DNA of 64,000 nucleotides, taken from the IMG/VR virus record IMGVR_UViG_3300009181_000033, positions 186,001 through 250,000 of that record; one strand, 5' to 3'. Every line of letters begins with the position of its first letter. Position 1 is the first letter of the stretch. Positions 1-59,222 of this stretch are shown piece after piece. The notes under the pieces are model-generated. The model was given only the letters and a program-made list of their open reading frames with translations, did not search any database and was not told the origin of the DNA. The position numbers and the translations under genes are program-made.

Positions 1-2580
1 TCTGGTCGTTTAGGTCGATGTTCTTCGGATCCATGTGCTTATCAAACCAAGCACGAACCTGTGCGAAAGTCGGATTCTCGATACCTTCACGGCGCTGGAG
101 GATGAGCGAAATGCATCGCTCAATAATCCTCAAGGTTTCAAGGCCAAGGAGGTCGAACTTAATCCAACCGAGCTCCTCAAGGTGCTTGGCAGCCATGCCT
201 TCGGCCCATGGAGTCTGAGGCTCGCCCCTCGCAAGAATCAGAGGCATCCTTTCTGCGATGTTTTCAGAAACAATGACTCCTCCAGCATGGCGACCCAAGG
301 ACCTGTTCTGTCGAAAGAGAATCTTGATGGGATCGGCAACCTCGGGATGAGCCGCAATGAAGTTCTGGAGGGACTTCGAATATTGAATGGCGTCCTCGTA
401 AGAGAGGACGAAGCTGTTCTTGTCATGTCCTGGCTTGAAGATGACCTTTTTGACATCATCCTCGATCGGTGCCATGGCAGCGTTGACCTCCTCGAATGGA
501 ATTCCATAGAACTTAGAAATGTCCTTGATGAGGCTCTTCAGCTTGAAGGTGTTGTAATTGGAGATCGGAATGACATTCTCGTTGCCAAAGTTCTTTCGGA
601 GCAACTCAATCAACCTGTCTCGGTCGGAGATATCACTATCGATATCAGGGAATCCTGAATTGTGTGTCAGCGTCCAATTTGTTCCTGATGTAGAAACCCA
701 AAAAGTGTGATCTTCATCAACTTCAATGTCAATCAAATTGACATCATTCTCATGATCAATGATCTCGATCTTGTTGATCTTTGTAGGCTCTTGTTGAACA
801 AAGAAATTATCCATTGGCAGTATGTGCTGTGCTTGAACTTCAATTTGTTTGCCTTCCCTTAGGACTAACCAAATATGATTTGGTGAACATTCGAAAATAT
901 TAGAGCTCACATGAAGTCTGTATGTTTTCTTAGAGTTAGAATTAAATTTCTTTTTGATTTTTCGAGGAACTAAAGAACCCCCAACAACAACATCACCTTC
1001 AACTAGCTCTTCGATTTTTTTATGCCCGCTCGGTGTTTTCACCAAAGTCCCAGGCAAAAGACATCGATGGGGATTCATGAATCTCTCGAAAGGAAGATCA
1101 TATTCGATAGGATCGAGGTTGGTAATGCCAAGGACGTATGCAACGAGAGCACCAGCAGCAGAGCCACGACCAGGACCAATCAACATGTTTTCCCTGGCGA
1201 TGTCGAGAATCTTTTTCATGGTCAAGAAGTAATTGGAGAACTTCTTGTCCTTGATGATCTTCAGCTCGTACTTGAGTCGATCGATGTATTCCTGCTTGTC
1301 CTCCAAACCTCGCCAAACAAGACCCTTCTTGCAAGCCTCGACTAGAGCCTTGTCTTCAGTTAGTCCCTCAGGAATGGCATAGGAAGGCAGCTTCATGGAT
1401 CGATCAGGGTGTGCCTCCTGCAGCTCATTATGAACGATGTCGTGTGTCCTCTCGATTGCATCACAAACAATCGTATCATCATAGAAGGACATTCCTTCTG
1501 TTGTCTTACGATAGGTGTCCCAAAGCTGTGTGGCATTCTTGGGATAAAGCTCACACTTTAGATCTTCTACGGTTTGAGGAAGATCCTTGGGATTGAAACT
1601 CTGATAGTTCAACCACCCAAGCTTCTTATAGATCTCCCTCTCCCGCCAGTGCTCAGGTCGAGAATAGTGAGAGTCACAAGTGACAACAAGGCGGTCAGTC
1701 AAGGAATTTCGCTTGGCAAATTCGATGATCGCGCGGTTGGCAAGGTGCTGCGCTGACAGCTTGTTAAACTGAATCTCGAGACAGACGTTTTCCTTACCAA
1801 CCGCATCAGAGAGTCGATCGTAGGTGTTGCCCATGGAATTGAGCACCTTTTCCATGAGAGACTGATCGTTGAGCAAGTCATGCTTCAGATCATCGAATGG
1901 AATCTTCTGGAGCTGCTCAAAGATATCGTAACAAAGTGGGCCACCAAGGCATGCTGTGCTCACCATAAGGTGGCCACCCTTGGCAGCTTCCTTCAACATG
2001 GAATAGTCGACCCTGGGGAAACGATAGAAGCCCTCCAGATACCCTCTAGAAACGAGGTGAAATAGTCTCTGCAATCCCACAGATGTTTTTGGAAGAACGA
2101 CCAGATGATGACGTCGCTTCACCGGATCGTTATATTTGCCGGACTTGGTCTCGTCCTCGTTCTCGATTGTGAGAGTGGAATCCTCGGTGCCAACGTCGAC
2201 AGTTTCGTCGTTGCCATCGACAACGGCAACGATAGGAGTGACAATGGATTCATCCTTGACGGGCTTCGTCTTAGACTTTTCCAAGTCTCTCTGCCATTGT
2301 GAGAGATCAGGGTGAACATACATCTCACAGCCATTGATGACCTTAAAGTTCTTACCTGCTTTCTTCAGTTTTTCTGAATAGAGATAGGCGTAACCATAAC
2401 CGTTCATTTGTCCATGGTCGGTCAAGGACCAGGCATCCATGCCGTTCTCCATGACGAAATCCATGTGATCTTGAGGGAAATCCATTCCATCAAAGGTCGT
2501 TACGAGAATCCGCTGTGCCCATGCATTCCAGCGAATCTGGTTGGCATGGACACGGGATTCTTTTTTCCTCCTGTGTTCAT
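1..2580 (-). CDS. dnaE: DNA polymerase III alpha subunit (family C), 3' end outside window; frame broken by 5 extra nt at 2498-2502; contains a mini-intein
   Basis: Manual translation (absent from the ORF track because no stop lies in the window). RBS AAGGAAAAGGAAAT, ATG at 2580, MNTGGKKNPVSMPTRFAGMHGHSGFS-stop. A second frame, open 2497 to 1, reads TFDG..SLTDHG..GCEMY..TCDSHY..GPGRGSAAGALVAYVLGIT..FERFMNPHR[intein]SGFPDIDSD..GRHAGGV..KFDLLGL. Confidence 0.95.
659..1063 (-). mobile_element. Contiguous mini-intein (135 aa, no endonuclease) in DnaE
   Basis: Starts CLLPGTLVKTPSG, block B-like CSPNH, ends DIEVDEDHTFW..LTHN then Ser; removal restores FERFMNPHR-SGFPDID. Confidence 0.93.
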
Positions 2581-2592
2581 ATTTCCTTTTCC

Positions 2593-3519
2593 TTATTTAC
2601 CTTCCCAGAGTGGGATGAGGTTTTTATACCTTACCTTAAGGTCTTCGTATTTTGCACCATCGATTAGTTCTATTTTGACATCTGGGTGATCCTGATTCAG
2701 GAGTGAAAGTTTTTCTTCACAAATTTTTGTCATTCGGCCCTTTAGTTCATAATAGACCCCTTCGCACAAAAAGTCTGGGGTGTATATTTTGCCATTCGAA
2801 AGCAAAAAAGAAGTTGGCTCGTATTCCCATGATTTGCCGCAATAATTCAAAATTCTGGCAAAATTTGCCTCCCAACAGCTTCTAAAATAAGCGTCATTCA
2901 AATCGTGTCGTGTTCCTCCCCTTGCCGACGTGTAATGAGTTTCTCTTTTGGTTCGAACTCTTTTTGAAGCAGAAATGCTCATTTTTAGCCGAGCATCATC
3001 AGACGGTTTCCTGCCTTTGTGTAAAGATGAAGCAAATTCCCGACCACGGCGTGTTTTTGACCAGTGTTCTTCACCGTGGTTTTTTATGCTAGTTTGTTTG
3101 ATCTTTTCAGGAATGGTTCCATTCGCCCACAGCTTCTTCACAGATTCGGAAATTTTTTGACGAACTTCATCAGTGAATGGATTCCATCCCGACTCGTATT
3201 TTTTCAATAACGCATTTGACAATTTTTCGTTTTGCAAAGATGTTCTGGAATAAGAACCGTTATTTTTACGTGTTTCAACCATGGAAGAAAGAACACAGTC
3301 CAAGCATTTCATGACTTCTTTCTTCTTTGAAGTGTCAAAAAAAGAGCTGCCGCACTTAAGGCAAGTTTTCTCCACTGATTCGTGCTCAGTGTATCTGGTT
3401 CTTGCTCTCAATGCATAAGAGCACTTTGTGGAACACGTTCTTTTATCCGGTACCGACAATTTCTTTTTTTCATACTGAAACTCAGTGTTACAAACTTCGC
3501 ATTTTTTTATCAAAAGCAT
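2593..3519 (-). CDS. Putative free-standing homing endonuclease (Zn fingers, NUMOD3-like repeats, PD-(D/E)xK domain)
   Basis: CxxC pairs, HKGRKPSDDARLKMS, RSCWEANFARIL..WEYEP..YTPDF..YELKG; start moved to ATG 3519 behind GGAGG. Confidence 0.75.
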   Translation of the reverse strand: MLLIKKCEVCNTEFQYEKKKLSVPDKRTCSTKCSYALRARTRYTEHESVEKTCLKCGSSFFDTSKKKEVMKCLDCVLSSMVETRKNNGSYSRTSLQNEKLSNALLKKYESGWNPFTDEVRQKISESVKKLWANGTIPEKIKQTSIKNHGEEHWSKTRRGREFASSLHKGRKPSDDARLKMSISASKRVRTKRETHYTSARGGTRHDLNDAYFRSCWEANFARILNYCGKSWEYEPTSFLLSNGKIYTPDFLCEGVYYELKGRMTKICEEKLSLLNQDHPDVKIELIDGAKYEDLKVRYKNLIPLWEGK

Positions 3520-14861: not shown

Positions 14862-16607
14862 TCAACCACATTTTGAAGTGCCACATGAAGAACACGTAAC
14901 GCACCCCTCCTTATAGACCAATCCTTCGACCCCACAAGAAGCACACTTCTTATCTGAAGTTGAAATTGTTCCATCAGGAATGTGACATTTCAAAACCCTG
15001 GCAATGACCTTGGAGAAGCTTCCCATATCGCTGTGCTTATCCTTTTGTAGCTGCTCCACAAGATATTGAATAGGGACTCCATGCCTGAGAGATAGAGAAA
15101 GTGTCCTTGTGAAAGCACCATGCAAGGGATTTGCGAATAGCTCAACTACATCCTTGAAGATGAGATTGTCGTCTTCACCCACAGGAATAGAAAGATTATA
15201 AGTTGAAACGCCGTCTCGCTTACCATTCTTAATGAGTGTTCCATTTTTCACCTTCTTAGGAACTTCAACGTGGGAGGAAAGGCCGCAGAACAACTCATAA
15301 GGCTTATCATCCAGCTTGCCAACCAAAACCAGATATGTCTCGGGACCATTAGAGCCCTTAAGATTAATCCTGTGAATATCACATGGAAGTTCCTTTGGTC
15401 TCTTTGGTGCATGATGCTCAGCCATCTTCTGGGGCTGACCATCTATGGTAGTTTCCTTGGGGGTGTCCTGGACTAGAACGCCTGTCCTGCAGCCATCGCG
15501 ATAGACTGTAAATCCTTTGCAGCCTGATTCCCAGGCTTTCATGTAAACATCTGCAACGACCTCACGAGAAACATCATTTGGCAGGTTACAAGTTTTTGAG
15601 ATCGCATGACAAACCCATCGCTGGGCGACTGATTGGAGCTTGACAGACATTGGCCAATCAACATCATTCGATGTTGCCTTCCAATAAGGTGAATTCTCCA
15701 CCTTGTCTTCCCCTCCAGTAACATCCATCCACTTCTTGAAACCATGGTGATAAACTTTATACTCTTGCCACTTATCGCCCAAATGATCAACAAAGTCGAC
15801 CCTTGAATCCACATCAGCAGAAGTTATCTTCTTGCGGCGCTTATAGGAAAGAAGATAAGCAGGCTCGATGCCGCTGGTAGTTTGAGTAAGACAAGAAACA
15901 GAGCCTGCAGGCGCTGTTGTTGTCAAAGCAATATTTCTTCGACCATATTTCTTCCAATTATCCACAATGGAAGCATCAGCCTCCATTATCCTCTGAAGGA
16001 AAGAGCTCTTGGTCTCAGCCTCCCACTCGTAAGCTGGGAATGAACCTCGATCCTTCGCCATGTCCACAGAAGAACGATAGGCTGAAAGAGTAAGGGTCTT
16101 ATAAATCTTCTCTGTTAGATCAACGGAGTCCTGAGAGCCATACCTGACATTCAGTGAAGCGATTGCATCACCAAGACCTGTGATTCCAAGCCCAGTCCTT
16201 CGAGCACCAGATGCCGCATCCTTAATCTTAGTCCAAAGATTAATTTCTGCTCTCTTCACATCAGCGCTCTCAGGATCTTCACTGATCTTATTCAGGATGG
16301 CATCAACAGCTTCAATCTCAAGATCAACGAGATCGTCCATTAGCTTTTGAGCCTTCTTAGAAACATCCGTGAACCTCTCGTAATCAAAGACAGGGTTGCT
16401 GCTAAAGGGTTCCTTAACAAACTTCGTAAGATTGACAAGCAAAAGTCGACATGAATCGTAGGGACTGAGGATCAACTCAGCGCAATTATGAACCAAAAGA
16501 CCATTCGCAAAAAAATTATGAACATCATCTACAGTGAGATCATAAACATCTTCGTTGTCAACGTTTTCAATAGTATCAATTTCATCCCAAAACGCTTGTT
16601 CAATCAT
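14862..16607 (-). CDS. nrdJ: Ribonucleotide reductase (class II-like) piece 3: 41-aa IntC plus C-terminal extein
   Basis: VYDLTVDDVHNFFANGLLVHN|CAELIL; RRTGLG, TTAPAGS, TTSGIEP, AISKTCNLP, KGFTVYRDG; C-terminal Zn ribbon. Confidence 0.93.
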   Translation of the reverse strand: MIEQAFWDEIDTIENVDNEDVYDLTVDDVHNFFANGLLVHNCAELILSPYDSCRLLLVNLTKFVKEPFSSNPVFDYERFTDVSKKAQKLMDDLVDLEIEAVDAILNKISEDPESADVKRAEINLWTKIKDAASGARRTGLGITGLGDAIASLNVRYGSQDSVDLTEKIYKTLTLSAYRSSVDMAKDRGSFPAYEWEAETKSSFLQRIMEADASIVDNWKKYGRRNIALTTTAPAGSVSCLTQTTSGIEPAYLLSYKRRKKITSADVDSRVDFVDHLGDKWQEYKVYHHGFKKWMDVTGGEDKVENSPYWKATSNDVDWPMSVKLQSVAQRWVCHAISKTCNLPNDVSREVVADVYMKAWESGCKGFTVYRDGCRTGVLVQDTPKETTIDGQPQKMAEHHAPKRPKELPCDIHRINLKGSNGPETYLVLVGKLDDKPYELFCGLSSHVEVPKKVKNGTLIKNGKRDGVSTYNLSIPVGEDDNLIFKDVVELFANPLHGAFTRTLSLSLRHGVPIQYLVEQLQKDKHSDMGSFSKVIARVLKCHIPDGTISTSDKKCASCGVEGLVYKEGCVTCSSCGTSKCG

Positions 16608-17406
16608 GATTTTTAATCTCCAAGTTTCTATTCGCTTTCCATTCTTTCAACGCGGCACTCATGTTTATTCCCAAACCTTCGAGTTCGACCAACGTTAATA
16701 ACACTGAGTTAATTTCAGAATATTCTTTTTTGAACTGTTCAAACTTATCGATTCTTTCCAAAGAACCGTTCGACCATTTCGATTTAATCTCTATTATCCT
16801 TTTCAAGGAATTATTTTCATATACAAAAAAGTCCGGTCTATAATATCGACCATCAGACAAGAGATAACTTCTGCACTCGACATCCCAAATTATATTCTTT
16901 TCATCTAGCCATTTTGCATATGCATATTCCCACGAACTTCTTAACCAAACATATTTAGAATGAGATTTATTGAAATGCCAGCCACAAAGATGATGTGTGT
17001 TGTTTTTGTCTCTATCAATTAATTTGCCAGTCCAATCCCTCCAGGGATTGGTTGGACCGCTGGCATTTTTTGATCTAATTTTTTTTAAATTTTCTGTCAC
17101 ACATGATCTTCCAGTCCTCTGGCTAATGTTAAGTGATTTAAAGATGGTACGTAATCGAGTGTAAGAAACGTTTCCTATCTCTTTTGACAACAACTTAAAT
17201 CCCATTCCACATTCACCATAAAGATAATTTAGATTTGAAATCAACTTGGGACAATCTGGATTGTCCTTGTCAATATAAAAGCTAGCTGTCATGTTTCCAT
17301 TTCTCGATTTAAATTTTCTTTTTTGTTTATCGCAAGCAATGATATGAATCAGCTGTCTTGTTTCTTCAATGAGTTCTTTATTTTCAATTACAATTTGATA
17401 CATCAC
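16600..17406 (-). CDS. Homing-endonuclease-like gene (PD-(D/E)xK) between halves of RNR split intein 2
   Basis: LRSSWEYAYAKWLD..YRPDFF..IEIKS; overlaps IntC gene by 8 nt. Confidence 0.8.
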   Translation of the reverse strand: MMYQIVIENKELIEETRQLIHIIACDKQKRKFKSRNGNMTASFYIDKDNPDCPKLISNLNYLYGECGMGFKLLSKEIGNVSYTRLRTIFKSLNISQRTGRSCVTENLKKIRSKNASGPTNPWRDWTGKLIDRDKNNTHHLCGWHFNKSHSKYVWLRSSWEYAYAKWLDEKNIIWDVECRSYLLSDGRYYRPDFFVYENNSLKRIIEIKSKWSNGSLERIDKFEQFKKEYSEINSVLLTLVELEGLGINMSAALKEWKANRNLEIKNHD

Positions 17407-17448
17407 TAACCCCTACCAATCATAAGTATGGAGCAGGGGTTAGTGATG
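17401..17448 (-). promoter_or_regulatory. RBS/start-occluding hairpin with ATACTTA motif in loop
   Basis: 14-bp perfect IR CATCACTAACCCCT/AGGGGTTAGTGATG; motif at 17423-17429. Confidence 0.8.
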
Positions 17449-17458
17449 ATCATTTATT

Positions 17459-18205
17459 TCATAACGAAAGAATTTTATCTTCCTTCGTGAGATTACCAGC
17501 TTCAACCCACCCGCGCTGAGTATAGACTCTATGATCTGGCGTTAGTTTAATTTTCTTTCCTGACTTTGTTGTTATCTGCAGAATCTTGGCATTGTCTTTG
17601 GTTTTGAAAGCAATTGCAGGTTTAATTACAATTTCATTGGTTTCAATGTCAAAGGCTTGAACATAGAAATTCGCCTTGTTGTCTGACAATTCTTTTACTG
17701 TTTTTGGTCCTGCATTTGTTCGAACAATTGTGTCACCTGTAACACATGGGTTTGTTGAAACATTTCCATAACCTTTATGCTCATAAACCTGGGTTGGAGT
17801 CATCTTCTTAACGGTATCCCAGAAGAGCAACCCCGGCTCGGCAGATGTCCATGCTGAATCAATAATTTGATTCCAGAGCTCACGAGCCTTGACAACCTTG
17901 GTGATCTTGGCTTCTGTAACAGGAACATCGACTGGCCATTGAAGAGTGAAGTCAGAATCATTCTTAACACAATTCATGAAATCATCGGAGAGGCGCACAG
18001 AAATGTTCGCTCCTGTGACTTTGGTAAGATCACGCTTAATATTGACGAATGTCTCCACTTCAGGATGACTACAATTGGAAGTGTAAAACCCATTTGCAAG
18101 AATTCGATGTGTGTCCTTGACCGTAAAGTCATATGTGGTTGATTTTCCGGCCGGAGAAATCCTCTTGATCTTTGATGTTGTCTTTTGAACGTTAGTGACT
18201 TCCAT
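17459..18205 (-). CDS. nrdJ: RNR piece 2: 44-aa IntC, 109-aa extein, 95-aa IntN
   Basis: YDFTVKDTHRILANGFYTSN|CSHPEV..GANISV..AEPGLLFWD..STNP|CVTGDTIV..LTPDH..KILSL. Confidence 0.93.
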   Translation of the reverse strand: MEVTNVQKTTSKIKRISPAGKSTTYDFTVKDTHRILANGFYTSNCSHPEVETFVNIKRDLTKVTGANISVRLSDDFMNCVKNDSDFTLQWPVDVPVTEAKITKVVKARELWNQIIDSAWTSAEPGLLFWDTVKKMTPTQVYEHKGYGNVSTNPCVTGDTIVRTNAGPKTVKELSDNKANFYVQAFDIETNEIVIKPAIAFKTKDNAKILQITTKSGKKIKLTPDHRVYTQRGWVEAGNLTKEDKILSL

Positions 18206-19151
18206 TTGTAATCTCCCTAATCTTTTCTACGCAAAATTCCCAGTTATTGTTTATGTCATGTTCCCAAAAGAAAAAATACTTATAACCATTTTCTTTTGCC
18301 AGTCTTTCCTTGATTTTGTCATCAAGTTGTTTCATGACTTGATGTTCCCTGAGCGGTTTCTTACCGTCTCCCCAGAAAGCTGGATTTCCATGCCAAAAAT
18401 CCCCATGGGCCTCTATCACTGTCTTTGAATCCCTCAAAAGAAAGTCATATTGTCTTTGTGCCAATATGAAGCTGTATTTGTAATTTACATTGATTTCTTT
18501 TAGAAAATTTTCTATTTTTTGTTCAATTGAAGTTTTTCGAAAGAGTTCTTTGTGAAATTGATTTCTGGTTGCATTTCGAATCTTTTCTATCGTTTCCAAG
18601 CTGTATATTCCAGTTTTATCCTTATTCCATGGGATATACTTTCTATCAAAAATATTATCGTTGTGTTTTTTTGTTAAGATTCTCTTATCTCTGATTTGTT
18701 CGTAATTTTCTGATTTACACCAGTGAGTCTTTTTGACTGAATCATTTCTTTGAGATAACTTAATTGCGTAACAAGTGTCGGAACAAGTTCCAATTTTTTG
18801 TTTTGATCTTTTGCATTTTGCATTGCAAATCGAACAAAGTCTCCAAGACTTTTCTTCTTTCTTTAAAAGCTTGGATGCTCTTTTGACTTGATGAAGCTCT
18901 TCTGGCGTATACTTCTCTACCGTTATCTTCCTTCTTGATATCTTGGCCGTCTCCCATACTGCCTTAAATTCATACTTGTTTTCAAAAAGTTCGTGAAGTC
19001 TTTGGTTGTTTATATTAAGGGCACGAACAAGCCCTGCCGGAGAACTCATCTTAAATTCATTAACAGTTTTTCCACGATAAAAGACTGTCTCCGGCAACTC
19101 AAAATAAAGAGTCGTGGTTGTTTCATTCAACAATCTCAGGATGATTGACAT
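18192..19151 (-). CDS. Homing-endonuclease-like gene (Vsr/DUF559-like, NUMOD3) between halves of RNR split intein 1
   Basis: PWNKDK..ETIEKIR, TSIE, YDFLL..IEAHGDFWH..WEHDI. Confidence 0.8.
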   Translation of the reverse strand: MSIILRLLNETTTTLYFELPETVFYRGKTVNEFKMSSPAGLVRALNINNQRLHELFENKYEFKAVWETAKISRRKITVEKYTPEELHQVKRASKLLKKEEKSWRLCSICNAKCKRSKQKIGTCSDTCYAIKLSQRNDSVKKTHWCKSENYEQIRDKRILTKKHNDNIFDRKYIPWNKDKTGIYSLETIEKIRNATRNQFHKELFRKTSIEQKIENFLKEINVNYKYSFILAQRQYDFLLRDSKTVIEAHGDFWHGNPAFWGDGKKPLREHQVMKQLDDKIKERLAKENGYKYFFFWEHDINNNWEFCVEKIREITNGSH

Positions 19152-59148: not shown

Positions 59149-59222
59149 TGGTTGGGGTGTAGTGAATCGAACACTAATTCACGGATTCAAAGTCCGTCGT
59201 CTTGCCATTAGACGACACCCCA
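59149..59222 (-). tRNA. tRNA-Gln(UUG)
   Basis: TGGGGTG/CACCCCA acceptor, ACGGA-CTTTGAA-TCCGT, TAGTG-TTCGATT-CACTA, encoded CCA. Confidence 0.95.

Follow-up and report, generated by a model that had tools for sequence, protein, structure and literature searches.

How the only replicative-polymerase gene of a jumbo phage can be expressed when its coding sequence is broken, within an active-site motif, by five bases that include a stop codon is the question raised by a locus at one end of a 64,000-nt stretch of viral DNA (positions 186,001 to 250,000 of the IMG/VR record IMGVR_UViG_3300009181_000033), hereafter the window. All features of the locus are on the minus strand, which was not stated in the preliminary description; the remainder of what was described there is correct. 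The dnaE ATG is at 2580-2578 and is followed by an exon (2503..2580) of 26 codons, MNTGGKKNPVSMPTRFAGMHGHSGFS, that ends with the PHP metal-ligand motif HGHSGFS. The last of these codons, TCG (Ser26), is at 2505-2503 and is followed immediately by a TAA stop codon at 2502-2500. The rest of the gene is in the -1/+2 frame, resuming from ACC at 2497-2495 and reading TFDGMDFPQDH..., and the two parts are separated by exactly 5 nt, TAACG (2502-2498). Removal of these 5 nt gives HGHSGFS-TFDG, and the colinearity with the Pfam PHP profile is exact. In an uninterrupted related dnaE locus, designated L026 (related viral dnaE loci are identified here by L numbers), LHSHSGFS occupies profile positions 2-9 and T position 10, and the downstream piece in the window has its F at position 11. 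The main body of dnaE (Pol III alpha; 1..2497) continues about 1.4 kb beyond the window start, in one open frame of 1341 codons, about 1308 of them from TFDG on. It has Pfam matches to PHP (4.5e-20) and DNA_pol3_alpha (3.6e-52), and the later PHP motifs TDHG, GCE and CDSH are present.

The insert is real. The source run matches it exactly at about 15x depth, contigs from two other studies, with their own SNPs, span 2498-2502 without any indel, and five IMG/VR contigs from other metagenomes carry the identical TAACG. An assembly or sequencing artefact is therefore refuted, with no evidence remaining in its favor. The interruption is also not unique. In addition to the window, 13 of 69 related viral dnaE loci are interrupted, 12 of the 13 at this codon, and together with a scan of the adjacent endonuclease family, there are 16 junction types of 5, 7, 9, 10, 11 and 16 nt, plus one of 42 nt located three codons upstream in L006. 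All three phases occur, so no single frameshift or readthrough explains them. All 16 types start with a stop codon directly after a TCN Ser codon, TCG being the rarest TCN codon in this genome at 0.84%. The triplet that precedes the resume codon, the proposed landing triplet, matches the proposed take-off codon at two or more of three positions in 16 of 16 types, and is a Ser codon in 10 of these and ACG or ACC (with the same last two bases) in 5; by our arithmetic, the chance expectation is 10/64 per junction. In L006, TCG is paired with TCA. In the window, the proposed landing triplet, ACG (2500-2498), matches TCG at only two of three positions, with the mismatch at the first codon position, and is not a cognate Ser codon, a weaker match than the GGA/GGA of T4 gene 60. 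Such matches can also be a passive by-product of target-site duplication at insertion.

Does the interruption simply inactivate the gene? Homing elements can be deleterious, and the PHP domain is probably not catalytic for polymerization in many DnaE proteins, and so a parasitic element could have left a pseudogene or a PHP-defective, N-terminally truncated polymerase. This is unlikely. The gene is the only PF07733 (Pol III alpha) gene in the complete 297.9-kb genome, and the frame is intact for about 1300 codons in all gapped alleles that do not carry further endonuclease or intein splits. Among gap-bearing alleles the dnaE body has dN of 0.07-0.2 with synonymous sites saturated, and TAACG is invariant in six distinct alleles whose synonymous sites are near saturation. 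The 26-codon exon belongs to a family with the consensus M-S-x-G-G-x-[EK]-N-P-V-R-V-P-x-R-F-x-G-L-H-x-H-S-G-F-S, has a dN/dS of about 0.15, and HxHSGFS is retained in cassettes whose endonucleases are only 39-63% identical. Both parts of the gene are therefore under purifying selection.

Directly 5′ of dnaE, at 2593..3519, is a gene for a free-standing nuclease (308 aa from its ATG) that stops 12 nt before the dnaE ATG. The 12-nt spacer (2581..2592) contains an AAGGA-type ribosome-binding site, and in several relatives the endonuclease stop codon overlaps or abuts the dnaE ATG. The protein has N-terminal Cys-rich zinc-ribbon-like modules, NUMOD3-like helices and a C-terminal PD-(D/E)xK nuclease of the T7 endonuclease I type (WEANFAR...YTPDF...YELKG). 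Pfam Phage_endo_I is matched by 8 of 10 family members (best E 8e-7), PHROG 945 ('endonuclease') is matched at 4e-11, and the top PDB fold hits of an AF2 model (pLDDT 79.7) are T7 endonuclease I (probability 1.0). Phage T7 endonuclease I (PDB 2pfj, 1m0d) is the closest fold and sequence relative of the C-terminal domain (25-30% identity over 76-100 aligned columns), but is a dimeric Holliday-junction resolvase of about 150 aa, whereas the 308-aa protein carries zinc-ribbon and NUMOD3-like DNA-binding modules and has the genomic behavior of a homing endonuclease. All full-length homologues found lie directly 5′ of dnaE.

The gap co-occurs with the endonuclease. Of 29 endonuclease-adjacent dnaE alleles 21 are gapped, whereas only 4 of the 57 alleles without the endonuclease are gapped. 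Both traits require at least 10 changes on the DnaE tree, and independent contrasts go in the same direction in about 6 cases and in the opposite direction in 0-1 (p about 0.03), although, as the alleles are phylogenetically related, the p-values are optimistic. Eight endonuclease-positive alleles have no gap, so a gap is not obligatory for coexistence; endonuclease-positive ungapped alleles carry variant motifs (HS[D/T/H/N]FS), which is compatible with an alternative route to immunity. That the endonuclease, exon and gap move together is apparent from L025 (filled) and L026 (empty), which are 99.3-99.6% identical except that 1014 nt replace 121 nt. The right breakpoint is at the 3′ end of the gap, and mismatch clusters of 79-108 nt flank the cassette on both sides, as expected of co-conversion tracts. 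L060 keeps a relic of the original dnaE promoter and first ~20 codons upstream of the endonuclease. In the window, positions 2498-3519 are thus a mobile homing-endonuclease cassette, inserted into the sequence encoding the first PHP metal-binding motif, that carries a free-standing endonuclease, its own replacement 5′ exon of dnaE and, at its 3′ end, the 5-nt stop-initiated gap.

The exon also contains a hairpin (2515..2553) upstream of the take-off codon. The lower helix pairs 2553-2545 (GUGUCCAUG, codons V-S-M) with 2523-2515 (CAUGGGCAC, codons H-G-H), a short upper helix forms inside the loop, and the 3′ arm ends 9 nt before the take-off codon. Pairing occurs in 85.9% of cells against 74.9% in shuffles (0/500), the covariation score is 0.34 against 0.16 (0/500), and slid registers give 17-68%. 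The isolated hairpin has a predicted energy of -22.9 kcal/mol, and the 9-10-bp helix is absent from resident exons and from endonuclease-positive ungapped alleles. The helix is, however, specific to one subfamily; the L085 group has a different helix, and L043 and L077 have a weak one. The conserved NPVRVP peptide, 13-18 residues before the take-off Ser, cannot be separated from the RNA helix it encodes. There is no take-off stem-loop and no Shine-Dalgarno-like element in the gap. The TCG-TAA-CGA mini inverted repeat noted in the preliminary description has only 3 bp, is not conserved in other alleles and is absent from the predicted folds; L006 has a 12-bp hairpin directly after the stop.

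These observations are most readily explained by short-range ribosome hopping over a gap that protects the cassette from its own endonuclease, although both hopping and immunity are inferred from sequence comparisons in an uncultured lineage, without RNA, ribosome-profiling or protein evidence, and we hold this explanation with only moderate confidence. Presumably the ribosome translates the 26 codons and pauses with peptidyl-tRNA-Ser on UCG and UAA in the A site, the tRNA unpairs, the mRNA slips forward 5 nt, the tRNA re-pairs on ACG and decoding resumes at ACC, so that one normal DnaE results. The hairpin, with its 3′ arm at -18 to -10 from the P-site codon, would be partly melted at take-off and its re-zipping may pull the mRNA forward, as proposed for the 5′ stem-loop of T4 gene 60. 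By analogy with MobA and gene 60, the gap would split the recognition site of the endonuclease and so protect cassette-bearing genomes, whereas uninterrupted alleles would be cut and converted by double-strand-break repair. The core of the preliminary description, a miniature stop-containing insert that belongs with the adjacent homing endonuclease and is skipped by the ribosome, as in T4 gene 60/MobA, is therefore supported. Nothing supports its further suggestion that the insert modulates PHP proofreading.

Other ways of expressing the gene are less consistent with these data. DnaE could be made as two polypeptides, with the 26-aa peptide released at the stop and a reinitiated second product assembling with it non-covalently, as split topoisomerase or NrdA subunits do after Mob endonuclease insertions. 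Endonuclease-split genes whose parts reassemble are known (Manning & Atkins, bioRxiv 10.1101/2022.08.31.505936), purifying selection on the exon would also fit a peptide acting in trans, and the window has an in-frame ATG five codons after the resume site. However, there is no conserved start codon. L065 has none within 60 codons, L003 carries the same TAACG but has no in-frame start near the junction, and the first ATG in L005 and L025 lies 24-32 codons in, past further PHP motifs. No ribosome-binding site precedes the resume site, and a 26-aa peptide that supplies one barrel strand and two metal ligands in trans has no precedent that we know of. This alternative, also raised in the preliminary description, appears doubtful. 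It is similarly improbable that different recoding events act in different alleles, with -1/+2 frameshifting at the 5- and 11-nt gaps, +1 frameshifting at the 7-, 10- and 16-nt gaps and stop-codon readthrough at the 9-nt gaps. The 9-nt class is in frame and so, at the sequence level, readthrough cannot be distinguished from a hop, a point also made by Atkins et al. 2016 (PMC5009743). But no slippery sequence is present at the junction in any class, three mechanisms would be needed at one homologous site, and each would add 2-5 residues to the PHP loop, between the conserved Ser and the Asp ligand, whereas all 55 uninterrupted alleles keep the two-residue S-x-x-D-G spacing. The genetic code is standard, and there is no suppressor tRNA.

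In the window, an A_AAA_AAG heptamer (2566-2560), the dnaX-type slippery site, is in the correct phase to direct -1 programmed frameshifting into the frame of the gene body, which is open from 2596, and this frame is open across the junction in the window and in L004/L012. The heptamer is, however, present only in the window and L004/L012; L003, L005 and L075 share TAACG but lack it, and the -1 frame is closed upstream in L005 and L025. Such a product would replace the selected RFxGMHGHSGFS segment with unrelated residues, in contradiction to the exon dN/dS of 0.15, and this explanation is very unlikely. Excision or editing of the insert at the RNA level, as suggested in the preliminary description, cannot be excluded without RNA data but seems remote, as no intron-like structure is present and we know of no mechanism that excises 5-16 nt from phage or bacterial mRNA.

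The closest documented system is the 50-nt bypass of T4 gene 60 with the MobA cassette (Bonocora et al. 2011, as described in Manning & Atkins, bioRxiv 10.1101/2022.08.31.505936). In both, a free-standing endonuclease gene lies directly 5′ of a short exon that ends in a take-off codon followed by a stop, an AU-rich gap then ends in a triplet that matches the take-off codon, here only partly in some alleles, and the endonuclease, exon and gap travel as one cassette into a conserved metal-binding motif of an essential replication enzyme. In both, alleles exist that kept the gap but lost the endonuclease, and the structure 5′ of take-off is stronger in cassette alleles than in parental alleles. 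The two are, however, not homologous. The target is the dnaE PHP motif rather than the Topo II Toprim domain, the nuclease is T7-endonuclease-I-like PD-(D/E)xK rather than HNH, the gaps are 5-16 nt rather than 20-50 nt, a take-off stem-loop and mini-SD are lacking, and the landing triplet in the window is only a 2/3 match. The host gene is also not split into two ORFs with added tails; instead, the cassette supplies a replacement N-terminal exon. MobA elements are reported exclusively in Topo2L (Manning & Atkins), and bypassing has not been shown experimentally here.

[quoted passage not shown] 2016, PMC5009743), involve, as proposed here, a short-range hop of peptidyl-tRNA over a stop codon onto a matching codon with no need for an elaborate gap structure, and the TCN-stop-NNN-TCN junctions are close natural analogues. 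Those events were engineered and of low efficiency, whereas the junctions here are natural and conserved, sit in an essential gene, would require hops of 5-16 nt and are accompanied by a conserved 5′ hairpin. The mitochondrial byp inserts of Magnusiomyces capitatus (27-55 nt; cited in PMC5009743) are also short non-coding inserts in essential genes that, as proposed here, are rendered harmless by bypassing, and tolerate two-out-of-three matches between take-off and landing, as in UCG to ACG in the window. They are, however, GC-cluster-like mini-elements at many sites that rely on an unassigned A-site codon and special mitoribosome properties, with no associated endonuclease, whereas here there is a single site, a stop codon in the A site, an endonuclease linkage and bacterial ribosomes.

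For about 35 years, T4 gene 60 and its homologues have been the only natural phage case of translational bypassing. The 2016 review states that shorter-distance counterparts had long been presumed and that no natural in-frame stop-hops were known (PMC5009743), the 2022 survey calls the bypass cassette unique (Manning & Atkins), and no prior report of the dnaE cassette was found. It is somewhat more likely than not that this is a second, independently evolved family of natural programmed bypassing and the first natural short-range stop-hops, in which an endonuclease of a new architecture invades the active-site motif of phage DnaE and restores the gene with a portable 5′ exon whose covarying hairpin drives the hop. 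If so, bypassing would be a general, repeatedly evolved solution for endonuclease self-immunity inside essential coding sequence rather than a T4 curiosity, and homing endonucleases could colonize the interior of essential active-site codons without an intron or intein. With at least 16 natural junction variants, gaps as short as 5 nt and a small covarying 5′ hairpin, such a family would provide a natural comparative series for asking what a bacterial ribosome minimally needs to hop. Gene callers split or truncate these dnaE genes, and so metagenomic phage annotations miss an intact replicative polymerase.

Free-standing endonucleases are also known to invade phage replication genes, including DnaE and RNR, as 'fractured genes' inside split inteins (Dassa et al. 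2009, PMC2677866). The nuclease family described here is found in exactly that arrangement in the RNR gene of this genome and in the dnaE of relatives L005-L009, although the nucleases reported by Dassa et al. were GIY-YIG or Vsr-like. At the dnaE 5′ site there is no intein, and continuity of the protein would have to be restored during translation rather than by protein splicing. The window dnaE does, however, contain a second mobile element that is not part of the bypass cassette, a 135-aa mini-intein (659..1063, minus strand; NPHR/CLLPG...LTHN/SGFPDID) that splits the DNA_pol3_alpha match into two halves, has a weak Hint_2 hit and is absent from L002 and L003.

The 297,894-bp IMG/VR jumbo-phage record of which the window is bases 186001-250000 has direct terminal repeats, is estimated by CheckV to be complete, and originates from freshwater metagenomes. 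The lineage is uncultured: INPHARED contains no full-length homologue of the endonuclease and the DnaE relatives in deposited phages are at most about 31% identical, whereas in cellular genomes only the isolated nuclease domain has relatives. The features of interest all lie on the minus strand. The dnaE gene starts at the ATG at 2580 and reads through 26 codons (MNTGGKKNPVSMPTRFAGMHGHSGFS) to a TAA at 2502-2500. From ACC at 2497, the remainder of the gene (TFDGMDFPQDH...) is in the -1/+2 frame, a single open frame of 1341 codons that leaves the window and has Pfam PHP and DNA_pol3_alpha domains. This is the only Pol III alpha gene in the genome and, with the reservation that families A and B were not searched, the single PF07733 gene argues against a second polymerase that would make dnaE dispensable. 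A 308-aa ORF (3519-2593) ends 12 nt before the dnaE ATG. Removal of TAACG (2502-2498) restores exact colinearity. In L026, an uninterrupted dnaE locus, LHSHSGFS occupies PHP profile positions 2-9 and T position 10, and the downstream piece in the window has its F at position 11, although the 26-aa exon alone is too short to score against Pfam. The 5 nt are not an assembly artefact, as the source run matches exactly at ~15x depth, and contigs from two other studies, with their own SNPs, span the site without any indel.

A scan with the DnaE body returned 69 viral loci (numbered with the prefix L) at 41-85% identity, of which 55 read HxH-x-x-x-S-x-x-DG without interruption and 13 are interrupted, 12 of them directly after the same Ser codon. 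One, L044, could not be assessed at that step. A second scan, with the endonuclease family, identified about 30 further full or partial homologues. Every full-length homologue lies directly 5' of a dnaE gene, and 21 of the 29 assessable loci have a gap. Together, these provide 16 distinct junction types of 5, 7, 9, 10, 11 and 16 nt, in all three phases, and every type begins with a stop codon directly after a TCN Ser codon. Assuming the canonical S-x-[FYM]-D-G spacing, the triplet before the resume codon matches the take-off codon at 2 or more of 3 positions in all 16 types, being a Ser codon in 10, ACG after TCG or ACC after TCC in 5, and TTG in 1. By our calculation, 10/64 is expected by chance per junction, and even eight independent lineages would give p of about 4e-7. 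These matches could, however, partly be a passive result of target duplication, the alleles are related, which inflates the statistics, and the landing triplet in the window is only a 2/3 match. TAACG itself is identical in six distinct alleles whose synonymous sites are close to saturation. The TCG-TAA-CGA inverted repeat, noted in the preliminary description as having the stop in its loop, is not conserved.

There is also a 42-nt junction type, three codons upstream, in L006 (L006:2949-2990) and in L153 (the L044 contig), two contigs from different metagenomes. Here an independent 39-nt insert with a 12-bp hairpin (HAHS TCG/TAA.../TCA GGA) is present in a resident-type exon with no endonuclease upstream, and the matched Ser codons would need a 42-nt hop, a span close to that of gene 60. 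Only two exact copies of this insert were found in IMG/VR, both in dnaE, which does not support a dispersed mini-element. A more distant DnaE family (HLHVH-T-EYS-PLDG), in L103 at ~1950-2000, is next to a partial homologue of the endonuclease and has an in-frame 9-nt insert, TAAGGTCCC, after a His codon. In this case the triplet before the resume codon (CCC) does not match the take-off codon CAT, and the insert is unexplained.

With gaps in all three phases, a single frameshift or readthrough event cannot serve all of the junctions, and no slippery sequence is located at the junction. An alternative genetic code or suppressor tRNA is rejected, as TGA, TAA and TAG are all used as stops, all three end long ORFs, and the 14 tRNAs include no suppressor. 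An A_AAA_AAG heptamer, the E. coli dnaX-type -1 slippery site, is present in phase at 2566-2560 (minus strand; dnaE codons 5-7), with the -1 frame open to the junction, and could in principle shift ribosomes into the body frame in the window. It is, however, missing from other TAACG alleles, the -1 frame is closed in the gapped alleles L005 and L025, and such a shift would scramble the selected HxH segment. Reinitiation lacks a conserved start codon: L065 has none within 60 codons, and L003 shares TAACG but has no in-frame start near the junction. The pseudogene reading fails on selection. The last 20 codons of the exon have dN/dS of about 0.15 across cassettes whose endonucleases are only 39-63% identical, and the gene body has intact frames and dN of 0.07-0.2, with only dN reported as NG86 dS is saturated.

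The neighbouring homing endonuclease is modular, with Cys-rich zinc-ribbon-like units, repeated NUMOD3-like helices and a C-terminal domain that has invariant WEANFAR, Y-x-PDF and YE-x-KG motifs. Pfam Phage_endo_I hits 8 of 10 family members and PHROG 945 'endonuclease' scores 4e-11. With the AF2 model (pLDDT 79.7), T7 endonuclease I was found first, followed by other mobile-element PD-(D/E)xK nucleases.

Several lines of evidence assign the gap to the endonuclease cassette. Among the dnaE loci from the first scan plus the window, 10 gapped alleles have the endonuclease upstream and 4 do not, and only 2 ungapped alleles have the endonuclease. On the DnaE tree, each trait needs at least 10 changes and, in independent contrasts, the two traits change together in about 6 pairs and oppositely in 0-1 (p about 0.03). 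L025 and L026 constitute a filled/empty pair with flanks that are 99.3-99.6% identical, in which 1014 nt (endonuclease, exon and gap) replace 121 nt, with the right breakpoint at the 3' end of the gap. There are 14 mismatches in the 79 nt after the gap, then 2 in the next 4400 nt, and 13 mismatches in the 108 nt before the cassette, against 1 in the preceding 1877 nt. Those are co-conversion tracts, as expected for homing by double-strand-break repair. L060, another cassette-bearing locus, still carries the original dnaE promoter and first ~20 codons as a relic upstream of the endonuclease, and this relic breaks off about 5 nt before the Ser codon. The element therefore inserts into the HxHSGFS/xFDG-coding site and brings a replacement 5' exon. 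In the window itself, the left boundary of the cassette could not be set, as the upstream gene context differs from that of the close relative L002.

The cassette exons form their own family, most are 26 codons long, and the family has an NPVRVP motif that is absent from resident exons. Alleles with a gap and a cassette-type exon but no endonuclease (L005, L028, L065) look like endonuclease loss after insertion. Conversely, eight endonuclease-positive alleles (L078, L080, L082, L083, L096, L097, L099 and L102; about 35-110 nt 3' of the endonuclease) have no gap and no 5' hairpin. Most of these carry altered motifs (HS[D/T/H/N]FS, S-I-H), possibly an alternative route to immunity from self-cleavage.

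Unexpectedly, the cassette exons of one subfamily also contain an RNA element. In the NPV subfamily, the V-x-x codons pair with the H-x-H codons 21 nt downstream, in the window 2553-2545 with 2523-2515, and the middle codon pair takes four or more complementary forms (CGA/UCG, AGA/UCU, GUU/AGC and UCC/GGG). For 15 distinct exons, 85.9% of cells pair, against 74.9% in shuffles (0/500), the covariation score is 0.34 against 0.16 (0/500), and all slid registers are worse. The isolated hairpin is -19 to -25 kcal/mol in the clade of the window. Resident exons and endonuclease-positive ungapped exons lack the hairpin, with a local MFE of about -8 kcal/mol, against -20 in gap-bearing exons (Mann-Whitney p about 1e-7, although the alleles are not independent). 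It is not a terminator, as there is no U-tract and a terminator scan found nothing there. The 3' arm ends 9 nt before the take-off codon, at -18 to -10, and the base of the helix should therefore be held open by the ribosome at take-off. This matches the model quoted for the gene 60 5' stem-loop, in which completion of pairing pulls the mRNA forward (PMC5009743), but that functional step is an inference here. The helix is specific to one subfamily. In a second cassette subfamily (L085-L089, L092, L093 and L101), the exon upstream of TCC-TAGGTA-TCT is shorter (MLRPDRFVGLHAHSTFS) and has a different predicted helix (AAGGUUGAA/UUCAACCUU), with a 3' arm that abuts the take-off codon.

The architecture works like that of T4 gene 60/MobA although, in the absence of RNA or protein evidence, hopping, immunity and the role of the hairpin remain inferences. 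An endonuclease is followed by a short exon that ends in a take-off codon followed by a stop, a gap then ends in a fully or partly matched triplet, together these form one cassette inside a metal-binding motif of a replication enzyme, and hit-and-run derivatives exist. The dnaE cassette is not a member of the gene 60 family, as the gene and the nuclease class are different, there is no homology, there is no take-off stem-loop and no mini-SD, and the gaps are 5-16 nt, against 20-50 nt. The TCN-stop-NNN-TCN junctions are natural analogues of the synthetic E. coli stop-hops, for which no natural occurrence was known according to a 2016 review (PMC5009743). No report of a dnaE coding gap or of natural stop-hops was found in the literature searched, which did not include most subscription-journal papers.

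Paralogues of the endonuclease behave as homing endonucleases elsewhere. In the window, the ribonucleotide reductase gene at 14862-19151 (minus strand) is 'fractured', with 17459-18205 holding the RNR N-part plus the intein N-half, 16600-17406 a free-standing paralogue of the dnaE-associated endonuclease, and 14862-16607 the intein C-half plus the RNR C-part. A Vsr-like ORF lies next door at 18192-19151. A contiguous 135-aa mini-intein (NPHR/CLLPG...LTHN/SGFPDID) is present in dnaE at 659-1063 (minus strand) and is absent from the close relatives L002 and L003, whereas in L005-L009 and L037 the same site holds a split intein, with a free-standing paralogue of the same nuclease family between the halves. 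A third paralogue (NUMOD3 plus an endo-I-like domain) lies between tRNA-Ser and tRNA-Met in a cluster of 11 tRNA genes that includes tRNA-Ser(UGA) (G000:C1:88512-91232, and L157:1189-1971), and the window itself holds one tRNA-Gln (59149-59222).
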